NCBI RefSeq assembly: GCF_001194135.2
Contig: NC_068981.1
Span: forward strand, 173,367,293 to 173,431,292
Source: Octopus bimaculoides
Taxonomy: Eukaryota
DNA length: 64,000 nucleotides
Direction of reading: 5' to 3'
Shown here: piece by piece, positions 151 through 55,600 of the stretch
Position numbering within the stretch: the stretch's first letter is position 1
Layout of the letters: each line of letters begins with the position of its first letter
Made by a program: the position numbers and the translations under genes
The notes under the pieces: generated by a model
What the model was told of the DNA's origin: nothing
The model's database searches: none
The model's input: the letters and a program-made list of their open reading frames with translations, nothing else

Positions 151-590
151 TCTTTTAAAAGAAATAAAATAATCCAAAACCGAAATGTTTAAATTAATGC
201 TTGTATGAAAGCCTATATACATATTTATATATATATGTCTGTATGTACATATATTTATATATGTATATGTACACGCACACACTCATGTATGTGTAAATAT
301 ATTAAATAACTTTCATATGATCGTTTTAAAGAATGTGCAAAATAAAAAGTATAAGTTTTCATAGCTAAATTTGTTTATTTAGACTCTACTCCATCCATCC
401 CCACCTTCGTTCGAATTTAGACGAACTTTATATATTTGCACTTTAAGAGCTCTATTACTTTGTGTTCCTTTTGTTACACGTCAGAGCTCATCTTTTAAAT
501 GGTCGGTCCTCGGCTGTTAACTTCAACTGAGTTATGCCCCTTCCTGAAATAATTTACCCTACCTTTCACTTCCATTACTAAACAATCAAA

Positions 591-600
591 CAAAATGGCG
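591..600 (+). promoter_or_regulatory. YY1-like motif (CAAAATGGCG), possible TSS-proximal element of the orphan ORF; contains a tiny uORF (ATG GCG CAA TAG)
   Basis: Matches the AANATGGCG YY1 core, ~150 bp upstream of the ATG at 749, in CpG-retaining sequence. Confidence 0.3.
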
Positions 601-748
601 CAATAGTTCCAGACTAGAGCTTTTCAGCACCTGCTTTTATTTTTGCCTAGCTCATATATTTATAGACATTTGTATTAGTTTTTGTTCCACCAAATCCCAG
701 CTACAGATAGCTACATCAACAACATATATAGGTGCGGGGTTTCCTGCC

Positions 749-1636
749 ATGCCAAAGAAGAAAAAGAAAATGAGTTACGAAAGACGTCGACGACAAGACA
801 GAAGTCGCAAGAGATTATTTCGTGGTTCACAGTCTGATTTATCTCCAATGAACGGTAATCATGGTAATTATGTTTCAAAAGCTTATGCTATTAATGAATT
901 TAATTTTGAGGATTTGGATCGAATGATTATGTTTATTACGGAATCGAAACAAATTCAGGGTCGCTACTACGTTCGTTATCTTCCAGGCATGCTTAATTCC
1001 GCTGGAGAATTGACTCCATGTAATTATAGACCCGTTTTCAGCTTTACTTCTACTGCTGCTTCATCTGATTATAACTTTATCCAAAATAATGATTACAGCG
1101 ATGGTTCCCCTGAAGTTGTTGACCTAACTGACAGCGACGGTGTTTCGTCGGAAAACAGTAATCCTGCATCGCCAGCTTCACCTTCAACTGTTGACGAAAC
1201 TCAAGAGAAACATACTGAAGTTGAAGGTTCAGAAAATGGTGAACCCGGTGAAAAAAAAGATTCGAAAAGTGAAACACCGGGAGCAGAAAAAGCGAACGTA
1301 TCTAAATCGGTACCAGGTTTTCTATCAACGATAAACAGGAAACAAACCGCACGGAAAAGTATGCGGCAACAAACTGAATCATTGTCTTGCGGAACTGAAA
1401 ACAGTGCATCTCCGGCGATTGACATGGAAACGGAAACTTCGTCCGTTTCTGCTTCTAATTCCGATTCAGTAAATACCAATAATAATATTCGAAGTAAAAG
1501 TACCAGTAGTTCTATCAACAAAAATAACCTTGTAGCTAACTCCTCACTAACTAGCAACTGTAAGAGTAAGCTACCATCTGATAAGTGGGACATTTTGGAT
1601 GGAATAACAGTGACTATGAATCCAGATTTTCGATGA
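749..1636 (+). CDS. Intronless 295-aa orphan ORF; predicted nuclear, largely disordered Ser/Thr/Asn-rich protein with NLS, SIM and H3-tail mimic
   Basis: Uninterrupted 888-bp ORF in AT-rich DNA, not repeat-derived by eye; gccATG start context. PKKKKK (aa 2-7) and RRRRQDRSRKR; VVDLT at 1115-1129; KQTARKS at 1340-1360. No family recognised. Confidence 0.6.
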   Translation: MPKKKKKMSYERRRRQDRSRKRLFRGSQSDLSPMNGNHGNYVSKAYAINEFNFEDLDRMIMFITESKQIQGRYYVRYLPGMLNSAGELTPCNYRPVFSFTSTAASSDYNFIQNNDYSDGSPEVVDLTDSDGVSSENSNPASPASPSTVDETQEKHTEVEGSENGEPGEKKDSKSETPGAEKANVSKSVPGFLSTINRKQTARKSMRQQTESLSCGTENSASPAIDMETETSSVSASNSDSVNTNNNIRSKSTSSSINKNNLVANSSLTSNCKSKLPSDKWDILDGITVTMNPDFR

Positions 1637-4600
1637 CCTAATGTTGTTCTTCTCGTACAAAAAAAAAAGATACAAAACAAAACAAAAAAAAGCAAAAAAA
1701 TTTTAATCATGTAAACTTTTACCAATTCGTAGCATATACATTAATTTCATGAAGTCATTCATTCAAGCGAATTTCTCGTTCTACTCATGAATTTCCAACA
1801 TGGCTGCCTGATTGATAATTGATTACAGGTATCTATTGAATGGATTAGTCACTTTAACTGGAAATTAGTGAGTGTGCAATTATATTCTAGTTTTGTTCGG
1901 CCAAATTTTTGGGTATCTATTGCTACATTAGGACTCCTGCACTGATGTCACGTGTTTCAGCAGCCATATTGAGACGATTTTAGCTGGCTGAACTAATTTA
2001 GTCACAGGCACTGCTGCATTTAAAGTTCCGATTTTCATCTGATAATGTGTTCATTTTATCCTTCTCTATAAATATTGCAAAAAAAAAAAAAAACCATTTT
2101 TTTTTTTTCGAAATATCCTCAATATATATTTTATTTTCTATTGTAAGAAAATGGGAAATGTTCCGAAGATGAAACTAAATAATCTACATTTTTGGACAGG
2201 ATACTCTTGAGTCGGCTAAACTTAAATGACAAAAAGAAAAAAAATTATTCGAGAAAGGCGGGTTTACTATGTTTATACATATGTATATGTGTTTCATATA
2301 TATTTATAGATATATAAAAACCTGTTGATGTTCTTCAGCTTGTGTTCAAAACAAAAATGCTGTGTGTCTATTTACGTCTCACTTAGCTTTAATATTTCTT
2401 CTTTTTCCTATTTGCTCCCCCTCCCTTTCTCGTTTTAAAAGGTAATATTTAATTAATCATTATTTAATACTTGGAAACCTTTACTCTAAGACTGTAAACC
2501 TTCTTGTGGTTATGCTTTGACTTACTTTTTAAGATCTGACTGATACTTTCAACAAACACAAACAATTTGAAAGGAAACAATTTTTTTATATGAAAAATAC
2601 ATGTAGAAAGCAAGCCACTCCATTTGAAAAAAAGGTTCATAATCATATGACTGCCATGCTGACTTGATTTATATTTTATTCAGTACCTTAAAATGTATAT
2701 CATCTTGATAAACTTTTTGTCTCCCTTCTTTATAAAACTTCATTTTTCTCTTCATTTCAAGTTAAAAAATAAATCTTAGTTGTGAGAATGTTGACCTTTT
2801 TGTACCTTTATTAAAAAAAAAAAATTAACGATTGAAAAATATTTTTAAAATGTGCTCTCAAGAACTCAATATTTACATACACAGACACACAAAAAAAAAT
2901 TACTGTTGGTGTTGTTTTAGTTGTAGAAAATGTTTGAAGAAGTATTTTGAAGAGATATTTACATTTACAGAAAAATGAATGGTTAATTGTATATGCTTGA
3001 TATAGATGTTTATGCATTACACAGCAGATATAGATATCTAGAACATTGAAGTTTTAAGTCGTATTTATGAATCATATCCTAACGTCTTCTAGTGATATTA
3101 TTTAATATACAAAATGGTTTAAAACAAATGTTAATAATCTAAACTATTTTTAAAATACTGCTTCCAGATCTGGATTTATTGTTCTTTGTTTACATATTTT
3201 GGCTTTCATCAAATAGCTGTTATATGATCTTGTTTTGTATATGCAATTGTTTATTTGTAACATTTTGACATATTTGTTCTGGAGAGTACAATATTTTGAT
3301 TTCCAAATATATAGGATAGATACATTATTTAATGTTTTTATTTGCACAGGAAATGTTTTTTGTAAGGTTTTCACGATAACATTTTTTAATTCAATTTTTA
3401 AAAAATATTTGTTGACAACAGTTGTGTTAAGAGTTGTGGATATTGATGGAATTGCCTGTGAACGAATTTAAATTACTATTTTTGTTGCAAATTAATTGCA
3501 TTCAAGAAAGTTGTTGACGTTGCTTAGCGTATCAGATTTTTTTTTTCTAATAGCTTAACCACCGACCATTGGTCTTTGTATGATATACACTCTGAATAAG
3601 TCTCTCTTTGCTCTATTTTTTTCCCTAATCTTCGTCCTTTTTTTTTTTTTCATTACAAATTAAGGTTATATTTATTGCACTTGAGTTATTTTGCCATTAA
3701 AAACTGACTCGCTGATTAAAAGCTAAACTAATATTTTAATTGTTGGATTGTCCCCGGTCAACTCTATTGTCAGCATGGAGGCTGCCGATTAAATAATCAA
3801 CATTATTTTTCAAGCCATGGCTATCCCGTCTTGTGAAAGGAAGAACATTGCAATTGGGACGTTCTTATTTAGCATCTATCGCAATAGCAACCGATCTATT
3901 TCCCATTTATATCATTGTATACACTATTATTTCTTGTAGAAGCTTACTTATTTGCAACAACCTAGTTTTTTTTTTTAAAGAAATCGTGCTAATTTCATTG
4001 TATTGTTTTATTATATTGAAAAAAAAAATTTATTACTTCGTCCTATGAAGAAAGGCATTGTTCATTATCATCTGTACTGAACGGGTTGAGCTGTCTGGAC
4101 AAATTGAGTGCATTTAATTCTTCGACTGAATTGAGTGGGAGGGTGGTGTGGATATAGCACGGGAAATATACTTGTTTGAGTAGGAGGAGGCGTATAAAAT
4201 GCATGTTCAGTGGCAGTTGTAGGAAAAGCAGTAACGGTTTATAGTGGGAGGACACAGCTCAACAACTGGCTGGTGATAGCTTATTAGGTTCATATTGGCC
4301 CTGATCGAGCACACCTATGAGCTCTTTCAGTCGTGATCAGTGTGTCCTTTTTCTTTTTCACCCAGGATCGCGTTATTTAAATGTGTTTCATGTGCTTTAT
4401 GGGCGGTATGATAGCATTCAATGGAAATCTGTGGCTGTTCTTTCTAGCCGGTCGGCTGATCGTTGCCTCGTCAAGTTTTTTTTTTCTTGTGTCGTATTTC
4501 ATTGACAGGTTGTTCGTTAAGTAATTCCAGTCGTGGAAACAATATTCTGTGTTGTATATTTTTAGTTCAGGAATGACAGATATTGGCTTTTGAACAGAGA

Positions 4601-5230
4601 TCACTTGAAATAGGTCTAAGTGATTTGAATGTAGTTAATAAGCTAATTGTTTAGTTTATCATGACATAACATGAAAGCTTAGCGCTTATGTCCGATTTGG
4701 GGGATCTTTTGCCTCTGGTAAACCAAGACACTGATGATGTAGTTACATTGTCAATATATTTAAGGATTTTTACAGTTGCCCGATAAGTCTAGTAGTGTTG
4801 TAATAGTTTATCAGTTGTTATTACTTCTATTTAACTTGGATTGTTTTGGAGTTTTGTCAGGTTTATTGAAATTTTAGATATTGTCAATGGAAAAAAAAAG
4901 TAAATATTAGATTAAAATAAATGAAAGCTGAAGAAACCGTAGCTAATCGAGCTTCGATAGTAGAACCAAAACAGTAGCAGTTAGTGTGATAGTGGCCGAA
5001 GAATGCGTTTAACCGATTCTTTCAAGCCTACATAGTAGCTTTTTAAATATTAGCCGTCGTATTTTGCGATAAGCAGTTACTGTTATTTACTTAATGAATT
5101 TAACATTGCAAAAACACACGACTTATTAATGTTCCACAGATGCTTAATACTATAGTGTTAAAATTTATATTATAAATACTTACACTAATGAGAAGTACTT
5201 CGTCAGATTTGTCAGAATTTTTCCTGATGA

Positions 5231-7552: not shown

Positions 7553-7697
7553 TATTGGCGTTAGGAAGGGCATCCAGCTGTAGAAACGCTGCCAAATCAG
7601 ATTGGAGCCTGGTGTAGCCATCTGGTTCACTGGTCCTCAGTCAAATCATCCAACCCATGCTAGCATGGAAAGCGGGCGTTAAACGATGATGATGATA
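7553..7697 (+). repeat. RTE 3'-end short repeat with (GAT)n tail; representative of at least 14 copies
   Basis: ggcgttaggaagggcatccagctgtagaaa...gttaaacgatgatgat. Others at ~5560(-), 14780(+), 20865(+), 21727(+), 22375(-), 34697(-), 47730(+), 48120(+), 48560(+), 50690(+), 54730(+), 60775(-). Confidence 0.85.
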
Positions 7698-10660: not shown

Positions 10661-10697
10661 ATTTTTGCATTACTTTTGGTGCAACCCCTCATATATA

Positions 10698-12990
10698 TCA
10701 TGATCATCATTGTTTAACATCCATTGTCCATGCTGGCATGGGTTGGACGGTTTGACCAAGCTGGCATGCTGGAAGGCTGCATCAGACTCCAGTTTGATTT
10801 GGCATGGTTTTCCATGGCTGGATGCCCTTCCTAATGCCAACCACTTTGAGAGTGTAATGGGTGCTTTTACATGCCACTGGCATGGGTGCCATTTGCTTGA
10901 CACCGGGATGTGTTTACATGCTACCGGCATGGGTGCCAATTTGCATGACACTGGTATCTGCCATGACTACAATTTTCCTTGGCTTCATGAGTCTTCTAAA
11001 GCATGACATAATGCCAAAGGTCTTGGTCATTGCCTCCGAGAGGCCCAACACTTGAAAGGAACTCAACCACTTTGCCTCTGTGAAGCCCAACATTCAAAAG
11101 ATGTTTTTTACTTGTCAACAGTACGGGTGCACTTGGCTTGACGAGACCTCTCAAGCACAGTACATTGCCAAAGGTCTCAGTCACCAGTCATTTCCACAGT
11201 GAGGCTCGAAGTTTGAAGATCATGCTTCACCACCTCGTCCCATGTCTTCCTGGGTCTACCTCCACCACAGGTTCCTTCCACAGTTCGAGATTGGCACTTC
11301 TTTACACAGTTGTCCTCGTCCATACATATCATATGACCATGCCAGTGCAGTCATGTCTCTTGCACACCACATCTGATTCCCTTATGCCTAACTTTTCTCT
11401 CAAGATGCTCACACTCTGTTGAACATGCACACTGACATTGCACAGCGAAGCATACTGGCTTCATTTCTTTCAAGCCTACGCATGTCCTCGGCTGTCACAG
11501 CCCATGTTTCACTGCCATGCAGCATAGCTGTTCACACACAGGCATCAAACAATCTGCCTTTCACTCTGAGAGCGAGGCCCTTTGTTGCCAGCAGGGGTAG
11601 GAGCTCTCTGAACTTTGCCCAACCTAATCTTATTCTCACAGCTATGCTCTCTGAGCATCCACCTCCACTATTAATGTGGTCACCTAGATAACAGAAGCTA
11701 TCTACTACCTCTAGCTTGTCCCCTGGCAGTTGATGGAGTCTATTTCCTGCACATTTTCAGCCTTTATTGTACCTGTGCATCTTCCACATGCAAAAGTTAG
11801 TTTCCCTGTTAACCTTCCTCTGATGTTGCTGCACGTTTTATGTGTCCAAAGCTTACACTGGGTGCATCTTATGGAATTTCTACCTACACCTTTTCTACAG
11901 ATTGAGCAGGGCCATCTACCTGAAGGGATTTGTGATTTGTCTGCCTTCCTACTTACTAAGACTTTGGTTTTTGCTAGGTTAACTCTAAGGACCTTTGATT
12001 CTAGACCTTGCTTCCATACCTGGAACTTCTTCTCTAGTTCTGGTAGTGACTCAGCTATTAGAGCAAGGTCATCAGCAGCCTAACTTGAATTCCTCTGTTA
12101 TTGCCTGGAGAACTAAACTGAACAAGAGGGGACTGAGCACCGATCCTTGGTGAACCCCTACCTGTACCCTGAATTCTTCACTGTACTCGTTGCCCACCCT
12201 CACCTTACTGGTAGTGACCCTGTACAAGGCTTGTATGGCTCTCACCAACCATTTGTCTATCCCTAGTTTCTGCATTGATCACCAGATAAGGCATCGGGGG
12301 ACTCTGTCAAAGGCTTTCTTCAAGTCAACAAAAGTCAAGTACAGAGGTTTATCTTTGGTTAGGTATTTCTCGTGCAGTTGCCTTACCGGAAATATAGCAT
12401 CAGTGGTGCTTCTACCTGGCACAAAACCAAACTGCATGACTCTCTCCGTAACTTTCATCACCTGATCCAACAATTTGATACCTCTGTAATTATTTCTATC
12501 TAAGGCATCACCTTTACCTTTATAGCAGTTGACTATGGTGCTGTTACACCAGTCAGTGTGTATGACTCCTTCATGAACCACATGATTTACAGTATGGGTG
12601 ACAAGGCCATAACCCACACTGCCAGATATTTTAAGCATCTCAGCAGTGATTCCTGATGGGTGGGGGTTCCCTGTCTTCACATCCTTAATTGCTTTATCTA
12701 CCAGGGTACTCATCTTTGAGGTAGCCTGCAGAAGATTATCATAAAAGTGGTCCCTCTGTTCATTTGGTAGGCCCACTTGTTGGGTGTAGGCAGATTTAAT
12801 TGTAGCTATACTATTCTGCAAAACTAGCCTGAGCTTAAGCACTCTACCGCACACTCTTACTTCCTCTATGACCTTATCCACCTATTTCTCTGCAAGAAAT
12901 ATGCCCACACCACCTTCTCCATCACTGTTACCTTCCCAGAAGATTTTATACCTATGTGTCTTGTCTGTGAGGAACCTCTGGATAAAAAAA
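10698..12990 (-). mobile_element. RTE-clade LINE, internally deleted, with complete 3' UTR and (GAT)n-type tail
   Basis: NYRGIKLLDQVMK, FGFVPGRSTTDAIF, TFVDLKKAFDRVPR, GVHQGSVLSPLLF. An APE remnant (IKSAYTQQVG) is fused directly to the RT start. Confidence 0.9.
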
Positions 12991-20652: not shown

Positions 20653-21019
20653 CCAATCTTCTCCAGACTGATTATCATTATTGCTTAAAATTATCAAAAC
20701 ATTTTTTCATTATACCTACATGACTACATCTGAAAAATGTTGGAAGTCAGTATTAAATCTTTATATCTTTTTCATTTTAATTGGGCAGTTTTCTTGGTAG
20801 TTTTCTTTTTTTTTTTTTTTTTTTTTTTTTTTTGTTAAGTTGCAATAGTCTGAAGTTTGTGTTAGGAAGAGCATCCAACCATAGAAACCATGCCAAAGCA
20901 GACACTGGAGCATGATGCAGTCTTTGGGACTCGTTAGGTCCTGTCAAATTGTCAAATCCATGCTAGAATGGAATATGGATGTTAAATTATGATGATGCTG
21001 ATGATATTGCAAAGTACAG

Positions 21020-26170: not shown

Positions 26171-29100
26171 NNNNNNNNNNNNATAAACATTCAAAACTTT
26201 GCTTCTATATCTTACATTATTTTCAGTGTTACATTTTAGCTGATGGTGAGGAATGTATAATGTGCTTACTTTAATTTCATTAAAATACCTTCTTTCGATT
26301 AATTCCAACAGTTAAGGCTTATTCCAGTTTATTGACTCTCAGCTGGGGTCCATATAACCCTTGGGGGCCCACATAAGATTTTGTTGCTAAAATTTATGTG
26401 CAATAAATTTGTTATACTCTTACAAGATATTTTAACAATTTTTAATACAATTCCTAATAATATTTAATTGTAAAAATATAGTTGGATTTTTAAAATATTG
26501 CATGACTATGGGGGTCCATCCAAGTAAAATAGGAATCAAAGGGGTCCATAGATAAAAAAAAAAAAAATCATTGAGAACCACTGCTCTAAATAAAAGTTTT
26601 TGTCCCCACAATTTAAGGAATCAAGTTCATTATTATTGCTGCTAGTGGTGAGGTTGCATACTTGTTTTACTCCATATGGTTGTTGTTTAACCCCTGGTTA
26701 GTTCTGACCAAGCAGACTTATGATCTAAAGCATTTCAACTGTTACTACTCATTTTTTTAAAGACATAGTTTATCTAAGAGTACACTATAAAATGTATCTT
26801 TTTCTTTGAGATAGTTGTTTGTGATTTGAGGGAGATCTAGGTGCTATTTTTAGCAGGTTAAGTGACTGTAGAAAGAGACTCTCATTGGATTGTTTACCTC
26901 ATCTTTTTAAACAAGTCTAGACATTTGCATAAAAGATTGCTTAAGTTAATGTTATAATCATTGTAAATCTGTAATGACAACCTCTGAACTGGGATTTATG
27001 GTTGGTACCTGTTTTACAGTTGGATTGACTGAGGCAATATAGTTACATTTACTAAGATAATTTCCTTGAATCACAAAGCTGTGATTGCTAAAAATGAACT
27101 AAAGAACACTCTACTGTCTTAACAAAGGATGAATACATTGAACAGTGTTTAAGATACAATGATGGCATGGTCATAACTGGAATGCCTTTCATCATAAATC
27201 TTCTCAGCTAGGACTGACCTGGAGCTAAATAACAGCAACTACTATTTAATTACCCCCTCCCAAGGGATGAGTTTAAATGTAATAAAATGCAAATACACTA
27301 ATTTATACAGTGTGGATTGGTATGTTATGAAGGCCATGCCTTAGACATTAGTGAGATAAATGAAATGCAGTAACACATTACTAGGACATTATTCAAACAT
27401 TTATTTATAAAGCTTGGGATACTGTTGTCCGAAGATAATGTTCAGAAAATAGGGGTCGTTCTTTAGCAGAGATGAAAGAAGTTTATGGCATGGTTAAGAT
27501 AAATAAGAAGATTGTAGGTGATGTATCAATTCTACTCATAGCACACTGTTGATTGTCCTTTTTGGTATGTCTTTACATATGTGTGTGTGTGTGTATTCAT
27601 TTTTCTTTTTATTGTATGTGTGTGTTTTCAGAGGTAGAGGGAAATATTATAATTAGAATTAGTTGCTAAAGAAAAGAGTAGTTTTGCATTTAGTGTTTTT
27701 CATCATCTTTAGATGTGTTTCTGGGAGTTTATTTCATCAGTGTAAAATTGTGATTTTTTTTCTTAATAATATTAATAGATTGTTTTTTTTGTTTTGTTTT
27801 TGTTTTATATGAAAGTCTATGGTAGAATTTTTGTTTCTTTTCACTTCTACTGTTTTAATGTCCAACATTATTAAAATTACACTTTTGATCAACAGAAGCA
27901 GTAAAATCTGTAAGAGATTTATATTTCAATTTTCCCAGCTCTTCAATAATGTTCGAGCTTATGATCCCGTCCTGGCAAGATTACCTCATATGGAGAAAGA
28001 ACTGTCACAACTCATGAACAATATTCAAATTGTGCGTCGACAGAGAAAACATACAACCTTAATGGCTGAGCAATATGAAGAACTCTTGAACAAGTTAATC
28101 AACTCACTTCGCAAATGCCAGTTAGAAGCCAGTTTATATTTCTTGAAAGAAGACCTTTCAGATTTTGAATTAGTCTTGGAATGGTTTGTTGCTCACATAT
28201 TCCTATCTTACTTACTTTTGGTCAAGAGATTTAGTATGTATTTTATTATTGTTTTATTGTTGTTGTTGTTGTGATAATGACGATGCTAGCGTACGTTAAT
28301 TTAGTTAGCAGGTATTTTATCTTGAAGTTTGGTGAGAAACAGGTCTCCTCAACTCTCAAGAATCTTTCTTAGGATTTTTGCAGAATATAGGATAGCATTT
28401 TTCTACAGGTCGACAATGCGAGTTTCAATTCCAATTTCTTTCAATCTTTAAGATAATATTTTGGGTGTTGTACAAGTGCACCAATTACTACAGGAATAAT
28501 TCTTGTCTTGGTCTTCCAAAGCCTCCTCAGCTTTCTGACTAAATAAATACATACATACATGCATGCATACAAACATACATACATACATTTGTACGTACGT
28601 ACCTACATACATATGTATGTACGTACGTACGTACACACACACACTCAGACTCATATTATCATACATGTGAATATAGATGCAGGCATGGCTATGTGGTAGA
28701 AATCTTTCTTCTTGGCCATATGGTTTAGAGTTCAGTCCTTCTGCGTGGCAATTTGAGCTAGTGTCTTCAACAACAGCTCCAGGCTGACCAAAACCTTGTG
28801 AGTAAATTCGATAGATGAAAACTGAAAGAAGCCCATTATGTGTGTGTGTGTGTGTGTGTGCATACACACGTGTGTGTGTGTGCATGCACACATGTGTGTG
28901 TGTGTGTGCATGCACACATGTGTGTATGTGTGTTACTATTTCCTTCTCTTGATTTCATGTGTGTCACTGTCACGCAAGCAGTATCATTCATTGCCAACCT
29001 TCTGAGAAAACATGTCTGATCATTGGGAAGCATCACCTTATGTTTGGAAACAGATAAGGATTGGTGACAAGGACATCTGGCCATAGAAAATCCACCTCAA

Positions 29101-31005
29101 CAAATTCTGTTCAACCATGCAAGCATAGAAAAGTTGATGTTAAAACAAAAAATAAGGATGATGGTAATGTATATGTATATGTGTGCTTGTGAATGTTTAT
29201 ATTACGACTGTTATTTTTAGGTAAATATTTTCATAGCAACTACATCTAGGTGTATATATTTGCTTAACACTAACTGCATCCAAGTGGTATTGTTATATAG
29301 TTAAAGGGAGATGACACTTACAGAATTACACCAGTTTTTGAGTGATTGTTCTTTTCAAATTAGATTAAATTCAAATTATCATTACTGACTGATCATTCAG
29401 ATCTGGTTTGCACTTCTTAATTAAACACTTTTCTTTTGCTCTCCTTTTAGCCTCACTTGAGTCATAAAGTTTATTAAGTGAAAATATTGAAACATTAGAA
29501 TTGCAGCATGTTTTTAAATGAGTATTTAAAGGGGTCAGCTTGACATATGCATGTGTTTAACCCTTTGCCAAGGCATTTTCATAAGTTTCTCCTAAACATT
29601 TATGCTTGTTTTCAGACATTTAGTTAGCCCTTTGTTTCATATGGTCTGTGTAATGGCAAGCATTCCTTTCATAAGTCCTAAGTATTTTGAATAAAATGGG
29701 GATATTATCAAATATGATGCATGGATGCCAGGAAATTCTGTCCTGATACACAGGACAGACAAAGGATTTAGGCTATTTGTCAATGAGGACTCCTGTATGC
29801 TGATGGTTTAGCACTCATGGCTGAATCTGTTGAAGATAGAAAGAAGGAATTCCAATTGTGAAAGTGAAACCTGAAAGGTCTCAAAGAAATGAATTTTTGT
29901 ATATATATATTTACATCAGCTGTTTCAGTATAATTTTACACATGCGTGAAACATAAGACAAAGTGAAACATTGGGTGGCTTTCGCCTTTTGAAAGTGGGT
30001 AGGTGATGGGTGGGAGAGGTAGGAGAAGGGGCATTGAGTGTTTGTTTAAGAAAAATTAAACTTTAAAAATAAATAGGAAACAACTTCTCTCTCATTCCAG
30101 GGAGAAAAACTAGAGGTAGTTGATAGCTTCCGCTATCTGGGTGACCAAGTNNNNNNNNNNNNNNNNNNNNNNNNNNNNNNNNNNNNNNNNNNNNNNNNNN
30201 NNNNNNNNNNNNNNNNNNNNNNNNNNNNNNNNNNNNNNNNNNNNNNNNNNNNNNNNNNNNNNNNNNNNNNNNNNNNNNNNNNNNNNNNNNNNNNNNNNNN
30301 NNNNNNNNNNNNNNNNNNNNNNNNNNNNNNNNNNNNNNNNNNNNNNNNNNNNNNNNNNNNNNNNNNNNNNNNNNNNNNNNNNNNNNNNNNNNNNNNNNNN
30401 NNNNNNNNNNNNNNNNNNNNNNNNNNNNNNNNNNNNNNNNNNNNNNNNNNNNNNNNNNNNNNNNNNNNNNNNNNNNNNNNNNNNNNNNNNNNNNNNNNNN
30501 NNNNNNNNNNNNNNNNNNNNNNNNNNNNNNNNNNNNNNNNNNNNNNNNNNNNNNNNNNNNNNNNNNNNNNNNNNNNNNNNNNNNNNNNNNNNNNNNNNNN
30601 NNNNNNNNNNNNNNNNNNNNNNNNNNNNNNNNNNNNNNNNNNNNNNNNNNNNNNNNNNNNNNNNNNNNNNNNNNNNNNNNNNNNNNNNNNNNNNNNNNNN
30701 NNNNNNNNNNNNNNNNNNNNNNNNNNNNNNNNNNNNNNNNNNNNNNNNNNNNNNNNNNNNNNNNNNNNNNNNNNNNNNNNNNNNNNNNNNNNNNNNNNNN
30801 NNNNNNNNNNNNNNNNNNNNNNNNNNNNNNNNNNNNNNNNNNNNNNNNNNNNNNNNNNNNNNNNNNNNNNNNNNNNNNNNNNNNNNNNNNNNNNNNNNNN
30901 NNNNNNNNNNNNNNNNNNNNNNNNNNNNNNNNNNNNNNNNNNNNNNNNNNNNNNNNNNNNNNNNNNNNNNNNNNNNNNNNNNNNNNNNNNNNNNNNNNNN
31001 NNNNN

Positions 31006-31042
<37 letters not shown>

Positions 31043-33868
31043 ATATATGTATATATATATGTGTGTGTGTGTATATATATATGTGTGTGTGTGTGTGCAT
31101 GTGTGTGTGTGTGTGTGCGTGTGTGTGTATAAATAAATAGATGGAGTTAAATGCAGGTGTTATTCAAATTCTTTTACTTCCAACATATGTTTTGAAGACA
31201 ACATTGGTATTATTCCAAAGGAATAAAATGGTGTAAAACAATGTAATCTTCTCATCAGGGAAAGAAAGAAAGAAACCAAACTCATCAATAAGACATTTTA
31301 ACAAAATGTGATGGAGATGTATAATGATGAACGGAACCCTATTAAGTTTTTTTAAAGAGCCGTTAGAAGATATAACGTCAAAGGTAGCCTATAGAAAGAG
31401 AAGGGGTAAAGGAGAGATATAAGCAGAAAACTAATAAAGGAGAAGTATAGAGCGATATGTGAATTAAAATAAAAGCTTAAAGCCTTGGAAATAGATATAT
31501 TTAGTGGAAGTGAAATGTAAGAAGAAAATCAATGTTCAAATTATATATAACGGTAGATATCACTTACATGAACTAAAGGTATGTTTCTGCCAATGTTTAC
31601 ATCGACAAGCACGCTCTATAAACGTGTTTATAAGGAGAATCTTAGAAAATAGAATAGGAAATAGTTCACTATTACAGAGTTGGCAGAATTCTTTGCCTTT
31701 ATCATATGGGAATGAAATGGAGAGAATCAACCAATCTAAATTAAATTGTTTATTATGGTCTTTTAGATACCAAATTAATTTTTTAAGCTCTGTACTGTTG
31801 CATTTATTACTATCCCTAAATGTAGAGTAATGATTAGAAATTCTTTTAGATAACTGAGAAGAAGAACTACCTATATAAAAAAAGACATCGGTACCTGAAG
31901 TAATTTTACACTGGTATATAGAGATTTTAATCTTAGAATTACTAGACATAAACTTAATTCTGTTGGAATTGACTTCAGAGACAATAACCTTGTTATTAAT
32001 ATTTCTAGTGGGATGATTAATATTAGCTAAATTAATGTTAGTATTAGTAATTGGATTCTTATTTAACTGACTAATATTATGTGAGGAGATAATTTGTGCA
32101 AGTTAATAATCGAGTAATACCCAGAATTCTTCAGAAAATTCCTAATAATAGCTTCCCAAAACTGGAAAGGAAGATTAGATTTAATTTGTCTCCCATAAGG
32201 AATAATCAACCAAATAGTTTTGCTAGTAGTTGCCTTATTTTTAGTGTAACTATCTTTGAAAGACATTGATTTACCTTTAGAATGAAGAAAGGGGGTTAAA
32301 TAACGGATATCTCCCTTATGTTGTAAACAAACCTTCCTCTGTTTGGTGTTGGCATATAAATTAAAATTGAAATCGTTCATATCGTTACAACTAGATTGCA
32401 TGTCTCCATTACTAAAGGTAGAATAAGATTGAATAGAATTAATGTAGGTAACTTTTCCTGTATAACCTACTGTAAGTAAGGCAGAGTTATAAAATTCAGC
32501 TTTGTCATTGAAAATGTCAACATTAGCAGATAACTTAGACAATCTAAATGAAATATTCTTAACTAAATTCTTAGTGATTGCCCTAGAATGATTACTGAAT
32601 TGGCTAATATACTTAAGATTGGTTGATGGTTTGTGGTATGGGAAGTACGAATTATTGTGTAAGTTAAGTGTAATATCTAAAAAGTTGGCTTCCGTTACAT
32701 CATCATAAAAAAACGATGCCTAAGCCCATTCTATGGAAAAACTTAACTAAACTATTCTTAACCTTTTGTACTTTTTGGTCAGAAACATTTTGAAGATAGA
32801 GTAAACAATCATCACGATACAGACCTCCATTGATGCTTGGAAACTGTTCTGCCATTTCATAAAGTATATATATACTGACCAAATCAGCTATTTGTGCTGA
32901 ATCAGAACTTTCTATCGTGACATCAAAACCATCAGGTGTATCTTTACAGACCCACAGCTTATCAAATTTTATGATAGATTTTCTGGCAGCCAGCTATGGT
33001 AAAACTAAGCATGTCACACACACACACACACACACTACAAATTAGCTTGTCTGCACTCATTCATTCATTCAGTATAAAACATGTATACAAAAGCTATCTA
33101 CTTGTGTTTATTTTTGTAGCCAGTCTGGTCCATTTGCAGTATCACCCACTGGTCAGTTCCTAATACCTGGATCATGTCCTGGATCTCTTGTTATTGAATT
33201 CATTAACAAAAACAAAGCATTGGCTAAACAACTTTTAGCACAGGCACTCAGGTAAGCTTCAGTTGATTTATATTGTAAACTGTATGTCAGATCAAGATTT
33301 AACAAAGTTTATTTAACTTGGTGTAAATATCTTATAAAAAAAACAAATCAGAATTATTTTTTGTTTTTAGCATAAATTTCTGCAGTTATTGATGATGTGT
33401 TTTTATATTGATATTTACTAAGTTTAATATACAGGCTGGGCCAAAAGTCATGTGCCAAAACTTTTGACATTTTATTTAGATTATGCTATTAATATTATTA
33501 TCCATTTTGTCCGTACAAGTACATGTATATTCATCATTATTTTATTCAATTTTATAAAAATTGAAGCATGCCTTTGACAATTTAGGTATGTGTTGAACTT
33601 ATTTTGTGCATGACGTTTGGCTCACACACACACACACACACACACTAAGGTGCCAGTGTGGCTGTGTGGTAAGAAGTTTGTTTCCTAGCCACATGGTTTC
33701 AAGTTCAGCCCCACTGCATGTGCAAGTGTCTTCTACTATATCCCTGGCAGAACAAAGCCTTATGAATTGATTTGATAGATGGAAACTGAAAGAAACCTGC
33801 CATGTATATGTATGTGTGCATGTTTGTGTGCGTGTGTGTGTGCGTTACTGTTTCCTTACCTTGATGTC

Positions 33869-42203: not shown

Positions 42204-45200
42204 CTGAAAAAAAATGCAAAAGAGAAAAAAATGCTAGTTACAATAGCAAAATTTCATAATCATTGATTTCTCACGTTACCAGAATGTTTCATATTAATGG
42301 AAGAGAGGACTTTTACTTTATGGAGCTTGCAAGATTTAATGGGCAACCGTAAGTTCACAGCTACAGAAAACACCTTTGTGCAACTATTACCAACTTTAAA
42401 TCTTCTTTCTAAGGAGTCAGTTGTCAAGTTGCAAGCTGTTCTGGATGTTGCATATGGCTATCAAATCAATCTAATTAAAACTTTTCAGTTAACATTATAT
42501 AGGCCAATAAACCTCTTTAGGTATTATGCCACTTAAAAATGGTTTGTGTTACTTTTACAAATTCCAGATTTAACACCTCAATCTAAAACATACAAACTGG
42601 TGTGTATTAAGAAAAATGTATTGTTTAATCATTTATTTATTTCTTTATTGTCCACAGGGGGCTAAACATAGAAGTGACAAACAAGGACAGACAAAGGGAT
42701 TAAGTCGATGACATCGACCTCAGTGCGTAACTGGTACTTAATTGACCTCGATAGGATGAAAGTCAAAGTTGACCTCGGTGGAATTTGAACTCAGAACGTA
42801 ACGGCAGACGAAATACCGCTAAGCATTTCGCCCGGCATGCTAACGATTCTTATTTCTTTATTGCCCACAAGGAGCTAAACATAGAGGGGACAAACAAGGA
42901 CAGACAAAGGGATTAAGTCGATTACATCGACCCCAGTGCGTAACTGGTACTTAATTTATCGACTCCGAACGGATGAAAGGCAAAGTTGACCTCGGCGGAA
43001 TTTGAACTCAGAACATAACGGCAGACGAAATACCGCTAAGCATTTCGCCCGGCATGCTAACGATTCTGCCAGCTCTCACATCCAGTCTTGGTATATATTT
43101 CACTAGTCAACTTGAAAGTTGGTTGAAAACAATCTGTTCGCCACTGCTGATTACCAATAGTTACCAATAAATTAGTGTTAATTTATATGGCAATGTTATA
43201 CATGTTTTAAAGTAAATTTTGTATATGCACAGGTTTGAACACACAAGTGAATAAAGAATATTCATGGAAAAACGAATTGGATATGGAGAATGCATTTTAA
43301 AAGAAACCTTGCTACTTGTCTAGGATTAAAAAAAAAAGTTGTTACCTTCCTTTAAAAACAAATGCTTATGATTTTATATTTAAAAAAACTATAATATTGC
43401 TTGACACGAAGAAATTTGCAAAGGAAGGGCAGAGTTAATTGACTATGACAGGTGTTTATTTTATAGAGAGGCTAGGTAGATTACAGTTGACTCATCTCTA
43501 ATTTCACTAATTTGTGCAAGTGTTAGTTTCATAGCTACAACACTGCTCTTTAAACACCAATAATTTTGATTCCTTCTGGTTACAAACTCAGTTTCTGCCC
43601 ATCAGAGACAGGCCATTGAATCAATGTTAGAGTAGTACTGGTATTTTTATTATCAACTGGAAGAAGAGGGTTGGGTAGCACAAGAAAATCAAATATGATG
43701 CAACTTGAACTCTTAATGAAGAAGAATGAGACAAAATACTGCAAGGCATTTAATCTAGTACTCTACCATTTCTGGCAATTAGCTGATTTTGAAACATCAA
43801 ACAACTTGTGGTCTTCATTTAATACACATTGCAGAATGCAACAAATTTAAGGGTAGCATGTAGAAAATAGATAAAAATTAAAAACTGAAATAAACTTACC
43901 TTTTCAAGTGCACTGCAGTCTTTATCTTTATGCAAATAATGATCTTGCCAGAATAACAACAATTCCCTTCAATTAATAGGATAAATTAAATTAGAAACAA
44001 AGTCATGAATAGATTGGTTTTAAATTGTAAGTTTCCTTGCAAAATAGAAAACTGCTGAAAAGGCAAGATAAATACTTAATAGTATTAAGATAAGCTCAGT
44101 AAAAATATTTTCCTATTACTGTTTTAAAAATCTGTTTCTGTTTATTTTTGCTACATATCTTATTCTTTGCTTGTTTTAGTCATTGGACTGCCTTGACAGG
44201 TTTAATTGAACAATTTGGTCCCAGTATTTATTTTTAAGTCTGATACTTATTTCATTGTTCTCTTTTTGCTGAACCTCTAAGTTACAGGGATGTAGACAAA
44301 CCAATACCAGTTGTTAAACAATGGTGGGAGACAAACACACAACAGGCTTCTTTCAGTTTTCATCTACCACATAAAGTCACATGGCCTAGGGCTATGGTAG
44401 AAGACATTTGCCCAAGGTGCTGCACCATGGGACTGAAACCCAAGACCATGTGATTGAGAATCAAACTTCTTACCCACACAACAATGTAACATTTTTTTAA
44501 AAGCATTCCAATTTTTTTTCAAAATTTGCCGTTCTTAATGTTTGCTTGAAGTCTGTTTAGCTCTAAGTGTCTATGGCCTGGTCACTGATCATTCCATCTT
44601 ATATATTCATACAATATATCAGAGATTCCTTTATCTCAACAACCATTTTTTTGTCTGTAGACCTTTTTTGATTCCTATTTTACTCTGGTGGACCTCATAG
44701 CCATTCAATGTTTAAAAAACTTCTGTTATATCTTTATAATTAAATACTATTAGGAATTGTGTAAGAACCCCCCCCCCCCTCCAATTTCTTGTATGTTGAA
44801 TGACCACATAGAGGTTCTCTCAATGGTGTGTTAAAAGCTTTTTGCTACAAAAGGTGGATACAACTAAACACTAAGCAACTAAGTACCATATATATTTGTA
44901 GATGAATCTTTTTTTTTATATTTGCTCTGAGCTTGAATTTCATAGGACACAATTACACTCACTAGTTGAGTGTGTAGAGCAGAGTTTTCCTGTCACTATG
45001 AATATCAGTAAACGAATAATAGGGTGGATAATAACATGTATGAAAAACAAACAAGTAGAATTTGATTCTACTACAAAAACAGATGTGCCTGCAACAAAAG
45101 GTGTGACAACTATAACACACCTGTCCGAATTTCTTTAGTGTATATGCACAGATTTAATTTAAAAAATTCTATTTGTGATAGAATAAAGTGACAAAAAAAT

Positions 45201-48200
45201 AAATCCTAAAAACTAAAAGGTAAAATATCGAATTAAGAAGCTAGTTTTAAGTTGCATGTTACTCAATATGCTGAAGAGCATAGAAATCATAGTTATAAGA
45301 GAATTTTGGTCAGAAAAACTTGAGAAAATGCCAAAAGTAAAAAAAACAACACAAAACTGTTCTCATTTGAGAAACTGGAGAATAATGCACACAAACACAC
45401 ACACACATATATATATCCTCATAAATAGGACTTGACATTTATATGGTTATATTAGGACAAACATTTCACTGTTATCCATGGATAAAAAAAGTGGTGACTG
45501 AAATAATGCTAGAGCCAATTGAAAATGGGAATGAATTGAAACTCAACATACCACACAGAGCCTCGAGGTTTGAAAAAATAATTCTATTGTAATCAATTTT
45601 ACTCTTAGCAATGTAAGCTACCAGATGGTTTGCTAATTGAACAATATAAAGGCACAGGGATGGCTGTGGTTAAGTTTATTTCCTAACCACATGTTTTGGG
45701 GTTCAGTCACACTCTGACACTTTCGGTAAATGTCTATCACAGCCCAGGGTCAACCAAAGCCTTGGGAGTGGAGAAATCTGTTGCGTGTATATGTCTTGAC
45801 ACTGTATGATAATTTTAAATGAACATCAGTGTCACACAAGTGGCAGTGTTTTCAATTCTCTATGAAGCCATGTCTCGCCAGGGAGAAATATCTTGCATGG
45901 AAATAAAAGATTGGTGACAAACGGGAACCAGCCATAGAAAAATTGCCATGACAAAACCTGTCTGACTGCGGCAAGCACGAAAATGTAGACATTAAAACAA
46001 TGAAGATGATGAAATTATACTAACAAGACATCTTCAAGGCTTTGCCCAAATCTTTATCAATAAGTGTCTTAAGAATGATTATTCCAGCAGTGTTGAAGAT
46101 GTATATTAGGAATTGGGACTTCAATATTTTCTTTTAAAACATATTCATGTATAAATTATCTGAATAACTTTTGTAGAAGCTATTAATCTAAAATACTAAA
46201 TATCTTACTCTACTTTGTTTCATTTGCCAATCTAGTAAATACATAACATTTCATAAAATGTTTAGTACAAAAAAGAGTGACAAACTGCAAAATAGCTGCA
46301 GTGCATATAAAACTAACACGGAAAAACTGACATGAGGAGATTAGGAGAAAACATGATAATACTGATTAAAAGCTTTTATGTATTACCTGAAATTACCCAT
46401 GATTGAACCAGATATATTAACATCCAAAAGGTCATCTGTGTCATCCTGTAGAGCATGAAGATACTTTGGTAAAATTTTCTTTTGATTGGCAAACATTAGG
46501 AATACCAGTGTTGTATTTAAACAGCTTACATTTTCCTGATAAACAAACACAAATATAAAAATAATTATGAAAGCTACCAAAAAAGTTCAAAATACAATTA
46601 AGAGAAAATGATTTCTTTCTAACAAAAGAACTGACAACTAAGATTTTATGTAGATAGAGCATTCAGGCAGATGCCACACACACTTTACATTTTAGGAGAA
46701 ACAATTTCAATCAGTTTGTTCTCATCTTGGTTTAAAATGTTAAAGTCAAATGTATTGAATAAACTGGATTTTTTGTTTTTCGTAAATATTTTTTCATTTC
46801 AAATTTTAAAACTAAGTGATTTCTTATAGGAAAGAAAGGAGTCATGAAATGGCTACTGATTATGAATTTAAGAATGTTAAAGATACAAATTCAGTGTTAA
46901 AATATTTTTCAGATATGGGACAAGATACACTATGTCTAAAATATTGGAGTGGCCACAAGAGAACGGCTTCATCAAATTGCAAAAATATTAGCATCATCAA
47001 TACCTGAGTGAGATTTTGAACACTAATTATGTTGATTAATTTCCGCAAATAGTCAAGTTGTTGTTTAAAATCTGCTATATACACTAATAAACGGTTGTGC
47101 TTTCGGATAGCTGAAAGATAAAAATGCATAAATAATCAACATATGGTCCATTTTCATTTACACATTTTCTTTTTAATACATAGACATACACCAATCATAA
47201 AAAAAAAAAAAATTAAGTTATGGTACTGTACTGCTGATCACAAGGACAGAAATAAAAACTTATCTATAACTTGTACCTTACATTATGCAAATGATCCTAT
47301 TTGGTACAAAACTAAAGGATACGTTTGTATTGCAGACATGTTAATCCATGAGATTTCAACACAAATCTATTTTAAATAGAGCAGAGAGTCAATAACTAAT
47401 AAGCTCAACTTTCATTAACATAGCAATCAGGCTTTAATGAAAACTTTCCAGAGAAATTATTTAAAACGAATCAATTTAACTAAGCTAGCATAATTCTTAT
47501 GATTTCATCTTCTTTCCACTTATTCTTCCCCACCTCCATTGATATACTAATGTTCGCATATAAACAACAACTGATCTTACCATCATATTGTTCGTCATCT
47601 GAGAAATGTTCAAGAGACAGAATTAAACTTCGGATAAACATGTTAGAATCCACTAGATTTCTGTTGACTGTTGAGATGAATTTATTAAACTTAAAAGAGA
47701 AAAAAAGAAAGTCACATTATATATATATATAACCCATGCTAGCATGGAAAGCGGACGTTAAACAATGATGATGATGATGATGACACACACAGAGTTTTAA
47801 GAATGGAAAAATGAAATATTGCTTAAAATTCTAGAGGCCAGAAACTTACAATTATATGTACCTACAACGATCTCGCTCGAAAATCCTACAGGAGCCAGTC
47901 AGGCGGTACTGGCAACGGCCACGCTCAAAATGGTGCATCTCATGTGCCACCCGCACAAGAACCAGTCCAGGGGCACTGGCAACGATCTTACTTGCGTGAG
48001 AAGACCCGGCAAGCCAAGNNNNNNNNNNNNNNNNNNNNNNNNNNNNNNNNNNNNNNNNNNNNNNNNNNNNNNNNNNNNNNNNNNNGGCACATAAAAGACA
48101 CCATTTCGAGCGTGGCCGTTTTCGTGCGGGTGACACGTAAAAGCACCCACTACACTCTCTGAGTGGTTGGCGTTAGGAAGGGCATCCAGCTGTAGAAACT

Positions 48201-52648: not shown

Positions 52649-55600
52649 AATAATTTTACCATTAATGTTCTTGATTTCATTCAGTTCATTTCTAGATAAC
52701 AATAGATGCTTGTAACTGAAAAAAGAGAAAATGTGGATGAAGAAATTTATTTTTATAGAGGAGAGAGATTTCACTGAAAAGTAGTGTTGAGTAATTGGGG
52801 GAATGGAGATCAATGTTTCAGACCTATGCATACAAATTTTATTACAGGCAACCAATGCTAAAAGTCATACTTAAAAGAGCTTAGTGGTTACTCAGTAGAT
52901 GCAACATCTATAGGATTCTTAAGAAAGAAAAACACTGAATTGTATGTAGGTTTCCTTTTCTAGGCTCCAAAGATGTCCAACACTTAATTATATAATGCTT
53001 GCATTGCTTCTATCAGGAAGATAGCCCTACTCCATAAAACCTATTGACAGTTAGGTGATTTTAACATGTTAAAATGTCTGACAGACGGGGTACTGTGCTA
53101 GTGATGGATTATAAACCATCAATTATTTAGCTACAAGTTCAACACCATATTAACTTCAGTTGTATTTAGGGTCAGACATACATTTACAATAAAATAAGAC
53201 TGCATCACAAAAATTAACCTTCCACTTCGGGATGACAAAATGCTTCAGCTTTAACAAATTCTAGCCCTTTAAAAAAAAGCTCAAATGAGACTCACAACAG
53301 AATGCTGCTCTCACCTTTGGGATGGTGCTATTGCTACACACAAAGACAGCCTAGACTATAAAAATAGGAAAATTCCCACACAACTAATTGCACAAAGTCC
53401 ACTCTTTGCCTTTTCTGTTGCTATTGTAATTGCCTGCTCCTCAGAGCTAGCTGGTCTTGTGCTCTTACCATTCAGATACTCCTAGCTAACTCTGTCCATA
53501 TTGTGCTCCTCCTTTGACTCCACATTAATCATTATGCCCAGTCTTTCCTTCTCAGAACACCCATCCTCTGGCATTTTTCTAACACATATCCTGCAACTGT
53601 ACAATTTTACCAGCCCTGTGAAGGCCATTTGTACAGACCCTTCACCTTTTGTCCAGACAAGACCAATAAATCAAAAGGAAAAAAAAAAAGAAAAAACAAA
53701 ACTACACTTACTCTGAGTGATCACAAAAACTATGAACAAGTCGAAGGAACTGGATTTTTAAAGCAACTTCCTATTAAAGGATGAATAAAAAGAATGTTAT
53801 ATATATTATAAAGAAACAAATTTTGAAAAAAATATACCAGGATTGATATTAAAATATATCACATTTGATTATAAAAAAATAATTCTATGGTAATAAAGTA
53901 GTAAAAATTTTGTATGTATTTTTCCAATGGTTTGGCTATGACTAAAGTTTTTGTAGACTTTCCAAAATAGGTAAGGTTGATATGTTCTGGATTGAGGAAG
54001 ACTGCAGATTTATGGGTAGGGAAAGAATTCAAAAGGGCCAATATTCTGAGAAAGAATTTGGTATAGCAGGCAATGCAAAAGTTGTGTGTGTGGGTGGGGG
54101 GAACAGAGACAATATGAGCAATGAGAGAGACATGCGAGTCAGGAGGACCAGAGTGAAAGTGGCCCAAGAACTCCATTTTAAGGAGCAGAGTCTATTGTAG
54201 TAGTGATAGAAAAGGCAAAATGAAAAGAAAGAATGCCTATGGGTTAGAGTGTATTAGTAAACAACTCCATGTTAATCTGTCAGGTGGCATTTCTCTGGAT
54301 GTAGCTTAAGGAATCCAGTGTGTACAGCAGCACATCAAATGTAAGAGTATTTCACTGTAGGTCTCACTTGAATCTCATAGAGAGTTGGTGAAGTGATTAT
54401 TGGGAGCTAAAGTATTTTGGGGCTCTAACAAGGATGGTTAATCTCTGCTAGTGATCTCATATCCAATATGTAGCAAGACATCAGAGATTATTAGTAATTG
54501 AGATGCCTAGAATTTGTTGTGATTTTGAAGGTTTTAATTGTGCTGTTGTCCATTATTGGGAGGGATAGTTCAAAAGTGCATCAGACAATATGTATTTTAT
54601 TCTATATATATATATTTTTCATACGTGATATTCAGTATAAGTAAATCCATTACAATGCTATTTCAACAAAAGTTGTCTGCTTCAACAGCTGAGGTGGGGG
54701 ATTTCATAGTTATAATTCACATACTAGTACCAAGTAAAAGCACCCATACTGGTGGCGTGTTAAAAGCACTCAGCACACATTTTAAGATGTTGACGTTAGG
54801 AAGGGCATCCAACTGTAGAAACCAAGCTATATCAGACTGGAATCTGGTGCAGCTTCCCAACTCTGGTCAAGCTGTCTAACCCATGCTAGCATGGAAAAAG
54901 AACATTAAAGGATGATGATAATGTGCTCCATAACAGTTGCCATTTATATTTTTGAGATGAGGTAAGTGATAGCTGTTGGGTAGCTCCAACTTGTTCTGAT
55001 AAAGCAATCCTATGACACAAAAGTAGCTAATTAAACATTTTATTTTCAACTATGAAATTCAGAATGTCAATGTATTAAGTATTTAATTTATATAAAATGA
55101 CATGCCAAATCAACTCCTGTAGGATTTGAACTGAGAACAGGCTGTTATCATTGTTTTAATGTCTACTTTTCCATGCTTACATGGGTTGGATGGAATTTGT
55201 TAAGGTAGATTGTCTATGATCAGGTGCTCTTCCTGTCACCAACCTGCAGCTGTTTCCAAGTAAGGTAATAAATATTTCCCAATGACCAGACATATTTTCA
55301 TGAAAGATTGGAAATGGGGGACACGGTTTGCATAGCTGACGGTTGTCAAGACAATGAGATGCTAACATACATAAACATGCAATGAGCTTCTTTCAGTTTC
55401 CATCTAATAAATCTGCTCAAAGCTTTGGTTGACATGGGGCTATAGAAGATACTTGCTTAAGATGTTAGGCAGTGGGACTGAACCCAAAACCATGTGGCTG
55501 AGAAGTGAACTTCTTAACCATGCAGTCATGCCTGCATTTATTATAAACAATTATATTGTTTATAAATTATAATTCAAACAGAAATTTTACAAGTGATTCT

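Follow-up and report, generated by a model that had tools for sequence, protein, structure and literature searches.

A lineage-restricted Octopus bimaculoides protein with an invariant histone H3-like peptide and a putative SUMO-interacting motif

Results

A conserved, intronless gene

The stretch of DNA that was analysed (64,000 nucleotides of the Octopus bimaculoides genome, RefSeq assembly GCF_001194135.2, contig NC_068981.1, positions 173,367,293 to 173,431,292; hereafter the window) contains at positions 749 to 1636 of the forward strand an open reading frame (ORF) that, according to the window sequence and its translation, consists of a single exon encoding 295 amino acids plus a stop codon. 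An earlier reading of the same letters, made without database searches (hereafter the sequence-only reading), had recognized in the product a copy of histone H3 residues K4 to S10, a SUMO-interacting motif (SIM) and a nuclear localization signal (NLS), and the ORF, motifs and coordinates that it gave were all found to be correct. The locus is an annotated but uncharacterised O. bimaculoides gene. The complete, intronless coding sequence (CDS, 749-1636, +) forms the core of UniRef100_A0A0L8HZE9 ('Uncharacterized protein', 357 aa), which was reached via its 90% cluster and shows 100% identity across all 295 residues; an exact-sequence look-up of the 295-residue form was without match. The gene is therefore not an unannotated one, though the existing UniProt model is itself partly wrong (see below). 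A literature search with the UniProt accession found no paper.

The CDS was compared with a Logan contig from a closely related species (L001), for which four runs gave near-identical contigs and which is collinear with positions 522-5169 of the window. The two coding sequences are 97% identical and differ in 27 codons, of which 19 carry synonymous and 8 non-synonymous changes. The synonymous (dS) and non-synonymous (dN) divergences are 0.106 and 0.0116, giving a dN/dS of 0.11. Frame-breaking indels in a close relative, which the sequence-only reading had named as evidence that would speak against it, were absent, the 888 aligned bases being free of gap columns. In the 3' flank the identity was 83.5%, and 317 of the 3,082 alignment columns contained gaps. 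The 227 bases that precede the ATG (522-748, +) were 95.6% identical with one gap column, and are conserved about as well as the CDS.

Two more distant relatives were recovered, P0002 (contig L005, 370 aa) and P0003 (contig L009, 362 aa), which are 43-47% identical to the octopus protein and 51% identical to each other. Both share with it the start region as well as the C-terminal end and the position of the stop codon. In the blocks that could be aligned, the proportion of synonymous differences (pS) was 0.8-0.95, that is saturated, and the proportion of non-synonymous differences (pN) 0.03-0.11. Because pN is this low while the synonymous sites are saturated, the protein is judged to be under long-term and strong purifying selection. 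The CDS occurs as one copy within the window, and the searches yielded only a single sequence cluster per distant lineage. Judged by these comparisons, O. bimaculoides has here a genuine gene that encodes a protein, lacks introns and is present as a single copy.

The ends of the Logan contigs were considered as evidence of transcription and rejected, since they lie at poly-T, at (TA)n, at a repeat (the 3' end of L001) or at window position 522. All four contigs of the related species start exactly at the equivalent of window position 522, and positions 300-521 are not repeated within the window. An antisense ORF of 174 aa (1201-1725, -) overlaps the CDS in its 3' half; as the substitutions follow the forward frame, this ORF is in all likelihood a by-product.

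A small family without known domains

A word-indexed search of 5.8 billion proteins returned three relatives, of which one is 97% identical and the other two are 43-47% identical to the octopus protein, and a profile search with the four-sequence alignment returned the same three. Low-complexity words probably crowded the candidate list of this word-indexed profile search. When 1.84 billion cluster representatives were searched exhaustively with HMMER, these three relatives and no others were obtained. A word search with the central domain only returned nothing, not even the known relatives, and this run is uninformative. In Pfam the octopus protein had only two chance matches far below threshold (E at least 3.9), P0002 and P0003 had no match at E<=1, and NCBIfam gave only a chance low-complexity match. 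A sequence search of the PDB with the full protein yielded nothing credible (best E 0.85). A match of the domain profile to lysyl-tRNA synthetase in the PDB was rejected, as it is the sum of fragments none of which is significant singly. In a scan of viral contigs none of the 54 pattern matches was confirmed as a relative, and reverse-transcriptase (RT), integrase and transposase domains were absent from the protein according to Pfam. On the protein databases searched, the label of a lineage-restricted orphan that the sequence-only reading had attached to the protein is justified. The protein thus belongs to a small family, which could be traced in no more than a few related lineages (presumably cephalopods).

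Five conserved islands in a low-complexity protein

Alignment of the three lineages revealed five conserved islands, which are separated by linkers rich in S, T, N, D and E that are of low complexity and otherwise could not be aligned. Better conservation than in the flanking sequence was the test that the sequence-only reading had set for its motifs, and the outcome favours functional motifs, as KQTARKS, VVDLT and the C-terminal peptide each stand out as invariant or conserved amid unalignable sequence. The difference was quantified in the disordered part (aa 100-278): 15 of the 16 motif columns are invariant in the three lineages against 19 of the 249 other columns, and a run of nine invariant columns was obtained in none of 200,000 shuffles. 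Most motif positions have different codons in different lineages but the same residue. The spacing between the SIM and the H3-like island is similar in the three lineages (70, 86 and 69 residues).

The H3-like island KQTARKSMR comprises aa 198-206 (1340-1366, +), its first seven residues KQTARKS (1340-1360) being identical to K4-S10 of histone H3. It is part of the segment RKQTARKSM (aa 197-205), in which Lys203 and Ser204 are the equivalents of K9 and S10, and Lys198 is that of K4. No lineage departs from this 9-mer, although 7 of its 9 codons vary synonymously; M205 and R206 are likewise invariant, though they are not H3-like. In P0003 the likeness reaches the R2 position (RFKQTARKS compared with RTKQTARKS in H3). 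AlphaFold2 assigned a predicted local distance difference test (pLDDT) score below 50 to the region around aa 190-215. A histone fold was not found, as there was no Pfam histone match and no PDB histone chain at E<=10, and a histone H3 variant was ruled out on this ground and because the identity is confined to seven residues of the tail.

Given the composition of this protein, 1.3e-6 matches to KQTARKS are expected per protein, and 2.9e-5 to any 7-mer of H3 residues 1-40. The chance of ~2e-7 put forward by the sequence-only reading is thus of the right order for a single motif but does not represent genome-wide significance. It is rather the invariance of all seven H3-identical residues together with M205 and R206, despite saturated synonymous divergence, that lifts the match beyond chance.

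G9a cannot do without an Arg in front of the target Lys and favours Ala or another hydrophobic residue ahead of this Arg, and on the other side of the target Lys it prefers a hydrophilic and then a hydrophobic residue (PMC8541646). The sequence T-A-R-K-S-M agrees with every one of these listed rules, the hydrophobic residue at +2 being the invariant M205. The chromodomain of MPP8 reads ARK[S/T], with Ala at -2 and Ser or Thr at +1 (PMC7618375), and A201-R202-K203-S204 has Ala at -2, Arg at -1 and Ser at +1. Methylated mimics of this kind in G9a, GLP, ATF7IP and LIG1 recruit HP1, MPP8 or UHRF1, and phosphorylation by Aurora B of the residue that follows the mimic Lys blocks the binding of HP1 (PMC9768651; PMC6172828). 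On each sequence criterion examined the island fits the ARK[S/T] mimic class. In P0002 and P0003 poly-Asp runs of 6-10 residues flank the basic island, and at these sites the octopus protein has a milder, Glu/Ser-rich stretch. Acidic tracts beside a histone-tail-like peptide could serve intramolecular masking or histone binding.

The putative SIM, PEVVDLTDSD (aa 121-130; 1109-1138, +), is of the SIMb type, a class whose core is [PILVM][ILVM]-D-L-T. Its core VVDLT (aa 123-127, nucleotides 1115-1129) lies within SPEVVDLTDSD. P[ED]VVDLT is invariant although its codons show synonymous changes. Depending on the lineage, the acidic or Ser-containing tail behind it is DSD, KEDD or NEEE. In the octopus protein the flank reads DSDGVSSE and the pLDDT at the SIM is below 50 (AlphaFold2). 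The SIMb cores of PIAS1 and RNF4 are VIDLT or VDLT, and acidic flanks raise their affinity (PMC3901395). VVDLT fits the SIMb class on each sequence criterion that was examined, so that the published-motif fit claimed from sequence held for this motif as it did for the G9a and ARK[S/T] rules. The same pentapeptide turns up in peptide lists of proteomics papers on other subjects, one of them GAPDH, and the VVDLT core alone is therefore not proof of SUMO binding.

The largest island is a domain of ~56 residues (aa 44-99; 878-1045, +) with the pattern KAYA..EDLDRxIMFITESKQIQGRYYVRYLPGMxNxxGELTPCNYRPxFSF, which includes invariant runs of 22 and 10 residues across the lineages. With the full-length alignment AlphaFold2 returned a mean pLDDT of 42 and disorder nearly throughout, except for a long beta-hairpin at aa 59-82; with the domain alone the mean pLDDT was 64, and 75-81 in the hairpin. 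The domain is predicted to consist of this long beta-hairpin and a short third strand. It had no PDB or Pfam sequence match, and when the prediction was compared with the PDB by Foldseek nothing reached E<=0.001 (best template modelling score ~0.3), so that no fold was assigned. The domain is probably a family-specific docking module. The C-terminal peptide KWDILDGITVTMNPDFR (aa 279-295; 1583-1633, +) follows the pattern KWxxLDGIT[VI]TxNPDF and occupies the extreme C-terminus in all lineages. Near the N-terminus a basic, NLS-like cluster, RRRRQDRSRKR (aa 12-22; 782-814, +), contains the invariant segments RRRQ (13-16) and RKR (20-22) and may function as an NLS.

Start codon, 5' flank and the public model

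The protein of 295 residues begins with the extension PKKKKK (aa 2-7; 752-769, +), which the sequence-only reading had treated as a feature of the protein. The distant relatives P0002 and P0003 begin with MSFDMRRRQ, their Met aligning with Met8 of the octopus protein (ATG 770-772). Met8 was also picked by the gene caller on contig L017, of which the DNA equals that of L001 in the aligned start region 150-300. From this alignment the conserved start codon is ATG 770-772. PKKKKK is therefore a feature confined to the Octopus lineage and not one of the family, and its translation is uncertain.

The conservation of the 5' flank (522-748) suggests that it is a promoter or a 5' untranslated region. 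It contains a TATA-like sequence, 'tatatagg', at ~726-733, a mini upstream ORF, ATGGCGCAATAG, at 595-606, and an AG at 698-699 that is the apparent splice acceptor of the UniProt model. Compared with the ORF of 295 residues the public model of 357 residues has 62 extra residues at the N-terminus. The last 16 of these are the in-frame translation of window positions 701-748, just 3' of the AG. The remaining ones ('..PVKLPNPCQHGRHTL..') recur at 12 or more sites scattered over the two strands of the window, for instance at 10697-10792, 54866-54919, 7628-7693 and 20937-21005, which indicates that the extension is mostly a SINE-like repeat (SINE, short interspersed nuclear element). In the public model (P0004) an upstream exon from this repeat is placed ahead of 'LQIATSTTYIGAGFPA'. 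Being repeat-derived, the 62-residue extension of A0A0L8HZE9 was ruled out as a part of the conserved protein and is probably a mis-predicted first exon.

The surrounding window

Runs of N (assembly gaps) are present at 30151-31005, 48019-48085 and 26171-26182. The first of these, of 855 bases, accounts for the GC content of 0.17 there and for the long ORFs that seem to run in both directions at 30063-31136. An ORF of 151 aa at 27819-28274 (+) exceeds the gathering score of the Pfam family DUF4461 (E 5e-14) and also matches the coiled-coil family MAD weakly; it probably represents an exon that belongs to a neighbouring gene, ~26 kb downstream from the orphan one. Two likely remnants of retroelements, possibly Penelope-like ones, are a fragment of a reverse transcriptase (RVT_1, E 3e-7) at 12279-12881 (-) and a sub-threshold GIY-YIG match (E 0.004) at 31560-31949 (-). 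At 42637-43067 a tandem duplication was found that comprises two copies of a 213-bp unit with 92% matches.

Discussion

The interpretation that we tentatively prefer, with a confidence somewhat short of even, is that the protein is a disordered, probably nuclear adaptor that would bridge SUMO signalling and the H3K9-methylation machinery. With about the same reserve we infer that the H3-like island engages writers or readers of H3K9 and that VVDLT binds SUMO. The SIM would bring the protein to SUMO-modified chromatin factors. Lys203 would be methylated by a G9a/GLP-type H3K9 methyltransferase, or possibly by SETDB1 or SUV39, and the methylated island would be bound by chromodomain readers of H3K9me of the HP1, MPP8 or CDYL kind. 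Phosphorylation of Ser204 may function as an off-switch, as it does at H3S10 and at T186 of G9a. Contacts specific to the family would be made by the hairpin domain and by the C-terminal peptide. In this way the protein would work like the part of ATF7IP/MCAF1 that comprises the K16 mimic and the SIM, without being related to it.

Functionally, the SETDB1 cofactor ATF7IP/MCAF1 (Windei in Drosophila) is indeed the closest of the known systems. Both are nuclear proteins, probably so in the case of the octopus, that carry in disordered regions an ARK[S/T] mimic and a SIM of the form xVDLT followed by acidic residues. The ATF7IP mimic K16 is methylated by G9a/GLP and read by MPP8, and its SIM is of high affinity (PMC6172828; PMC7618375; PMC3901395; PMC9768651). 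There is, however, no detectable homology between the two proteins. The order of the motifs is reversed in the octopus protein, in which the SIM precedes the mimic; it has about a quarter of the size of ATF7IP, possesses a beta-hairpin domain and a C-terminal peptide of its own, and its identity with H3 extends over seven residues compared with a core of about four in ATF7IP. Membership of the ATF7IP/MCAF family was considered and dropped, as the SETDB1-binding and FN3 domains are absent by Pfam.

The automethylated mimics G9a K185 and GLP K205 as well as LIG1 K126 are likewise internal Lys residues of the ARK[S/T] type in disordered segments. Their methylation creates sites for HP1, MPP8 or UHRF1, with a switch provided by phosphorylation of the residue that follows (PMC8541646; PMC7618375; PMC9768651). 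These mimics sit in enzymes of known catalytic function, whereas that of the octopus is found in an orphan protein without a catalytic domain and retains the equivalents of K4, Q5 and T6 as well. The SIM resembles those of PIAS1 and RNF4: a [VI][VI]DLT core lies in a disordered region and precedes residues that are acidic or can be phosphorylated. Unlike these two, the octopus protein has no SP-RING or RING domain, and it has one SIM instead of a cluster. A further parallel is EZHIP, an H3K27M-like inhibitor of polycomb repressive complex 2 (PRC2) whose histone-like peptide is its functional core. It is also a small, disordered and lineage-restricted protein with a short conserved histone-like peptide, but in EZHIP a Met replaces the target Lys in a K27 context, whereas in the octopus protein the Lys is retained in a K9 context.

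Several observations weigh against an adaptor of the H3K9 machinery. After post-hoc choice of the motif about one exact H3 7-mer is expected per proteome, which makes the match on its own unremarkable, and the partner of an invariant basic 9-mer might be a kinase, an importin or a WD40 protein of the RbAp46/48 type. Of ATF7IP no domain was found by Pfam, neither the SETDB1-binding one nor the C-terminal FN3. Conservation is highest in two modules for which no function is predicted, the C-terminal peptide and the hairpin domain, for which reason the core activity may lie elsewhere. Moreover, the conservation rests on only three independent lineages, the taxa of the Logan sources being unverified, and the ends of the Logan contigs do not tell RNA from DNA.

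The first of these points leads to the alternative that the identity with H3 is coincidental, KQTARKSMR being a functional docking or modification site outside the H3K9 machinery. It might be phosphorylated by a basophilic kinase (R-K-S-hydrophobic), act as another NLS or importin site, undergo serine ADP-ribosylation at its Lys-Ser pair or be the ligand of some cephalopod partner, and its match with H3 would then stem from the restricted choice of sequences among basic linear motifs. K, R, S and T are abundant in the protein, the conserved M205 and R206 are not H3-like, no domain of the H3K9 pathway was found in it by Pfam, and the chance expectation for H3(1-40) 7-mers given above is in keeping with such a coincidence. 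A kinase site or an NLS, on the other hand, needs no invariant Q, T and A at -4, -3 and -2, and yet all seven H3-identical residues were kept while the synonymous sites became saturated. In addition, one lineage has the equivalent of H3 R2, and Met at +2 is preferred by G9a and present in known mimics. A coincidence is on balance rather unlikely, though it deserves serious consideration.

Alternatively, the island might act as a decoy or pseudosubstrate that occupies H3-tail-binding pockets stoichiometrically and thereby keeps its partners off chromatin or inhibits them. The targets would be H3K9 methyltransferases or demethylases, Aurora B, readers of K4me0-K9 or RbAp46/48, towards which the SIM and the hairpin domain would direct the protein. 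Decoy models are provided by EZHIP, which as a mimic inhibits PRC2, and by DPPA3, which acts on UHRF1. The conservation of the motifs is the same for a decoy as for an adaptor and sequence cannot separate the two, but a small, disordered, lineage-restricted protein is what known endogenous inhibitor mimics look like, and the retention of Lys198, the K4 equivalent, together with the K9 equivalent would suit readers of both positions. The target Lys is, however, kept with no inhibitory residue in its place, and the motif is present as a single copy. We consider a decoy improbable.

That the ORF is a chance ORF, a pseudogene or derived from a transposon or virus, including the captured viral or transposon suppressor of silencing that the sequence-only reading had entertained, could be suspected from an intronless ORF of low-complexity composition in a repeat-rich region with a repeat-derived first exon in its public model, but is largely refuted and retains hardly any probability in view of the dN/dS of 0.11 without indels, the full-length orthologues with conserved start and stop positions despite saturated synonymous sites, the single copy of the CDS in the window with one cluster per distant lineage, and the lack of viral-contig relatives and of RT, integrase and transposase domains.

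The adaptor that we prefer could be taken a step further. The protein may be a convergent cofactor specific to cephalopods, in which the copy of H3 4-10 serves as a surrogate tail that can be switched by methylation and phosphorylation and, combined with the SIM and a hairpin domain not seen before, links SUMO-modified chromatin factors to writers and readers of H3K9, or in which it titrates dual K4me0/K9 readers off chromatin. This extension is speculative and we regard it as doubtful, as we do the corollary that the protein is a non-homologous counterpart of ATF7IP or of regulators of the DPPA3 type. Cephalopods are known for their unusual genome organisation and repeat content.

Known endogenous histone mimics are found in well-known enzymes and cofactors and usually copy only the ARK[S/T] core. 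The orphan family described here holds seven consecutive residues of H3 (K4-S10) invariant, alongside an invariant SIM of the high-affinity type, and the analysis corrects the public model of its gene. A protein family with the design of a histone mimic plus a SIM that is not homologous to the known ones is plausible from these sequences. Should the mimic not be used by the H3K9 machinery, the protein would still be a lineage-restricted one made almost wholly of conserved short linear motifs. If it is so used, the combination of SUMO binding and an H3K9 mimic seen in ATF7IP would have evolved independently, a new small protein domain would be defined, and the octopus protein would offer a compact and tractable handle on the control of heterochromatin in cephalopods.

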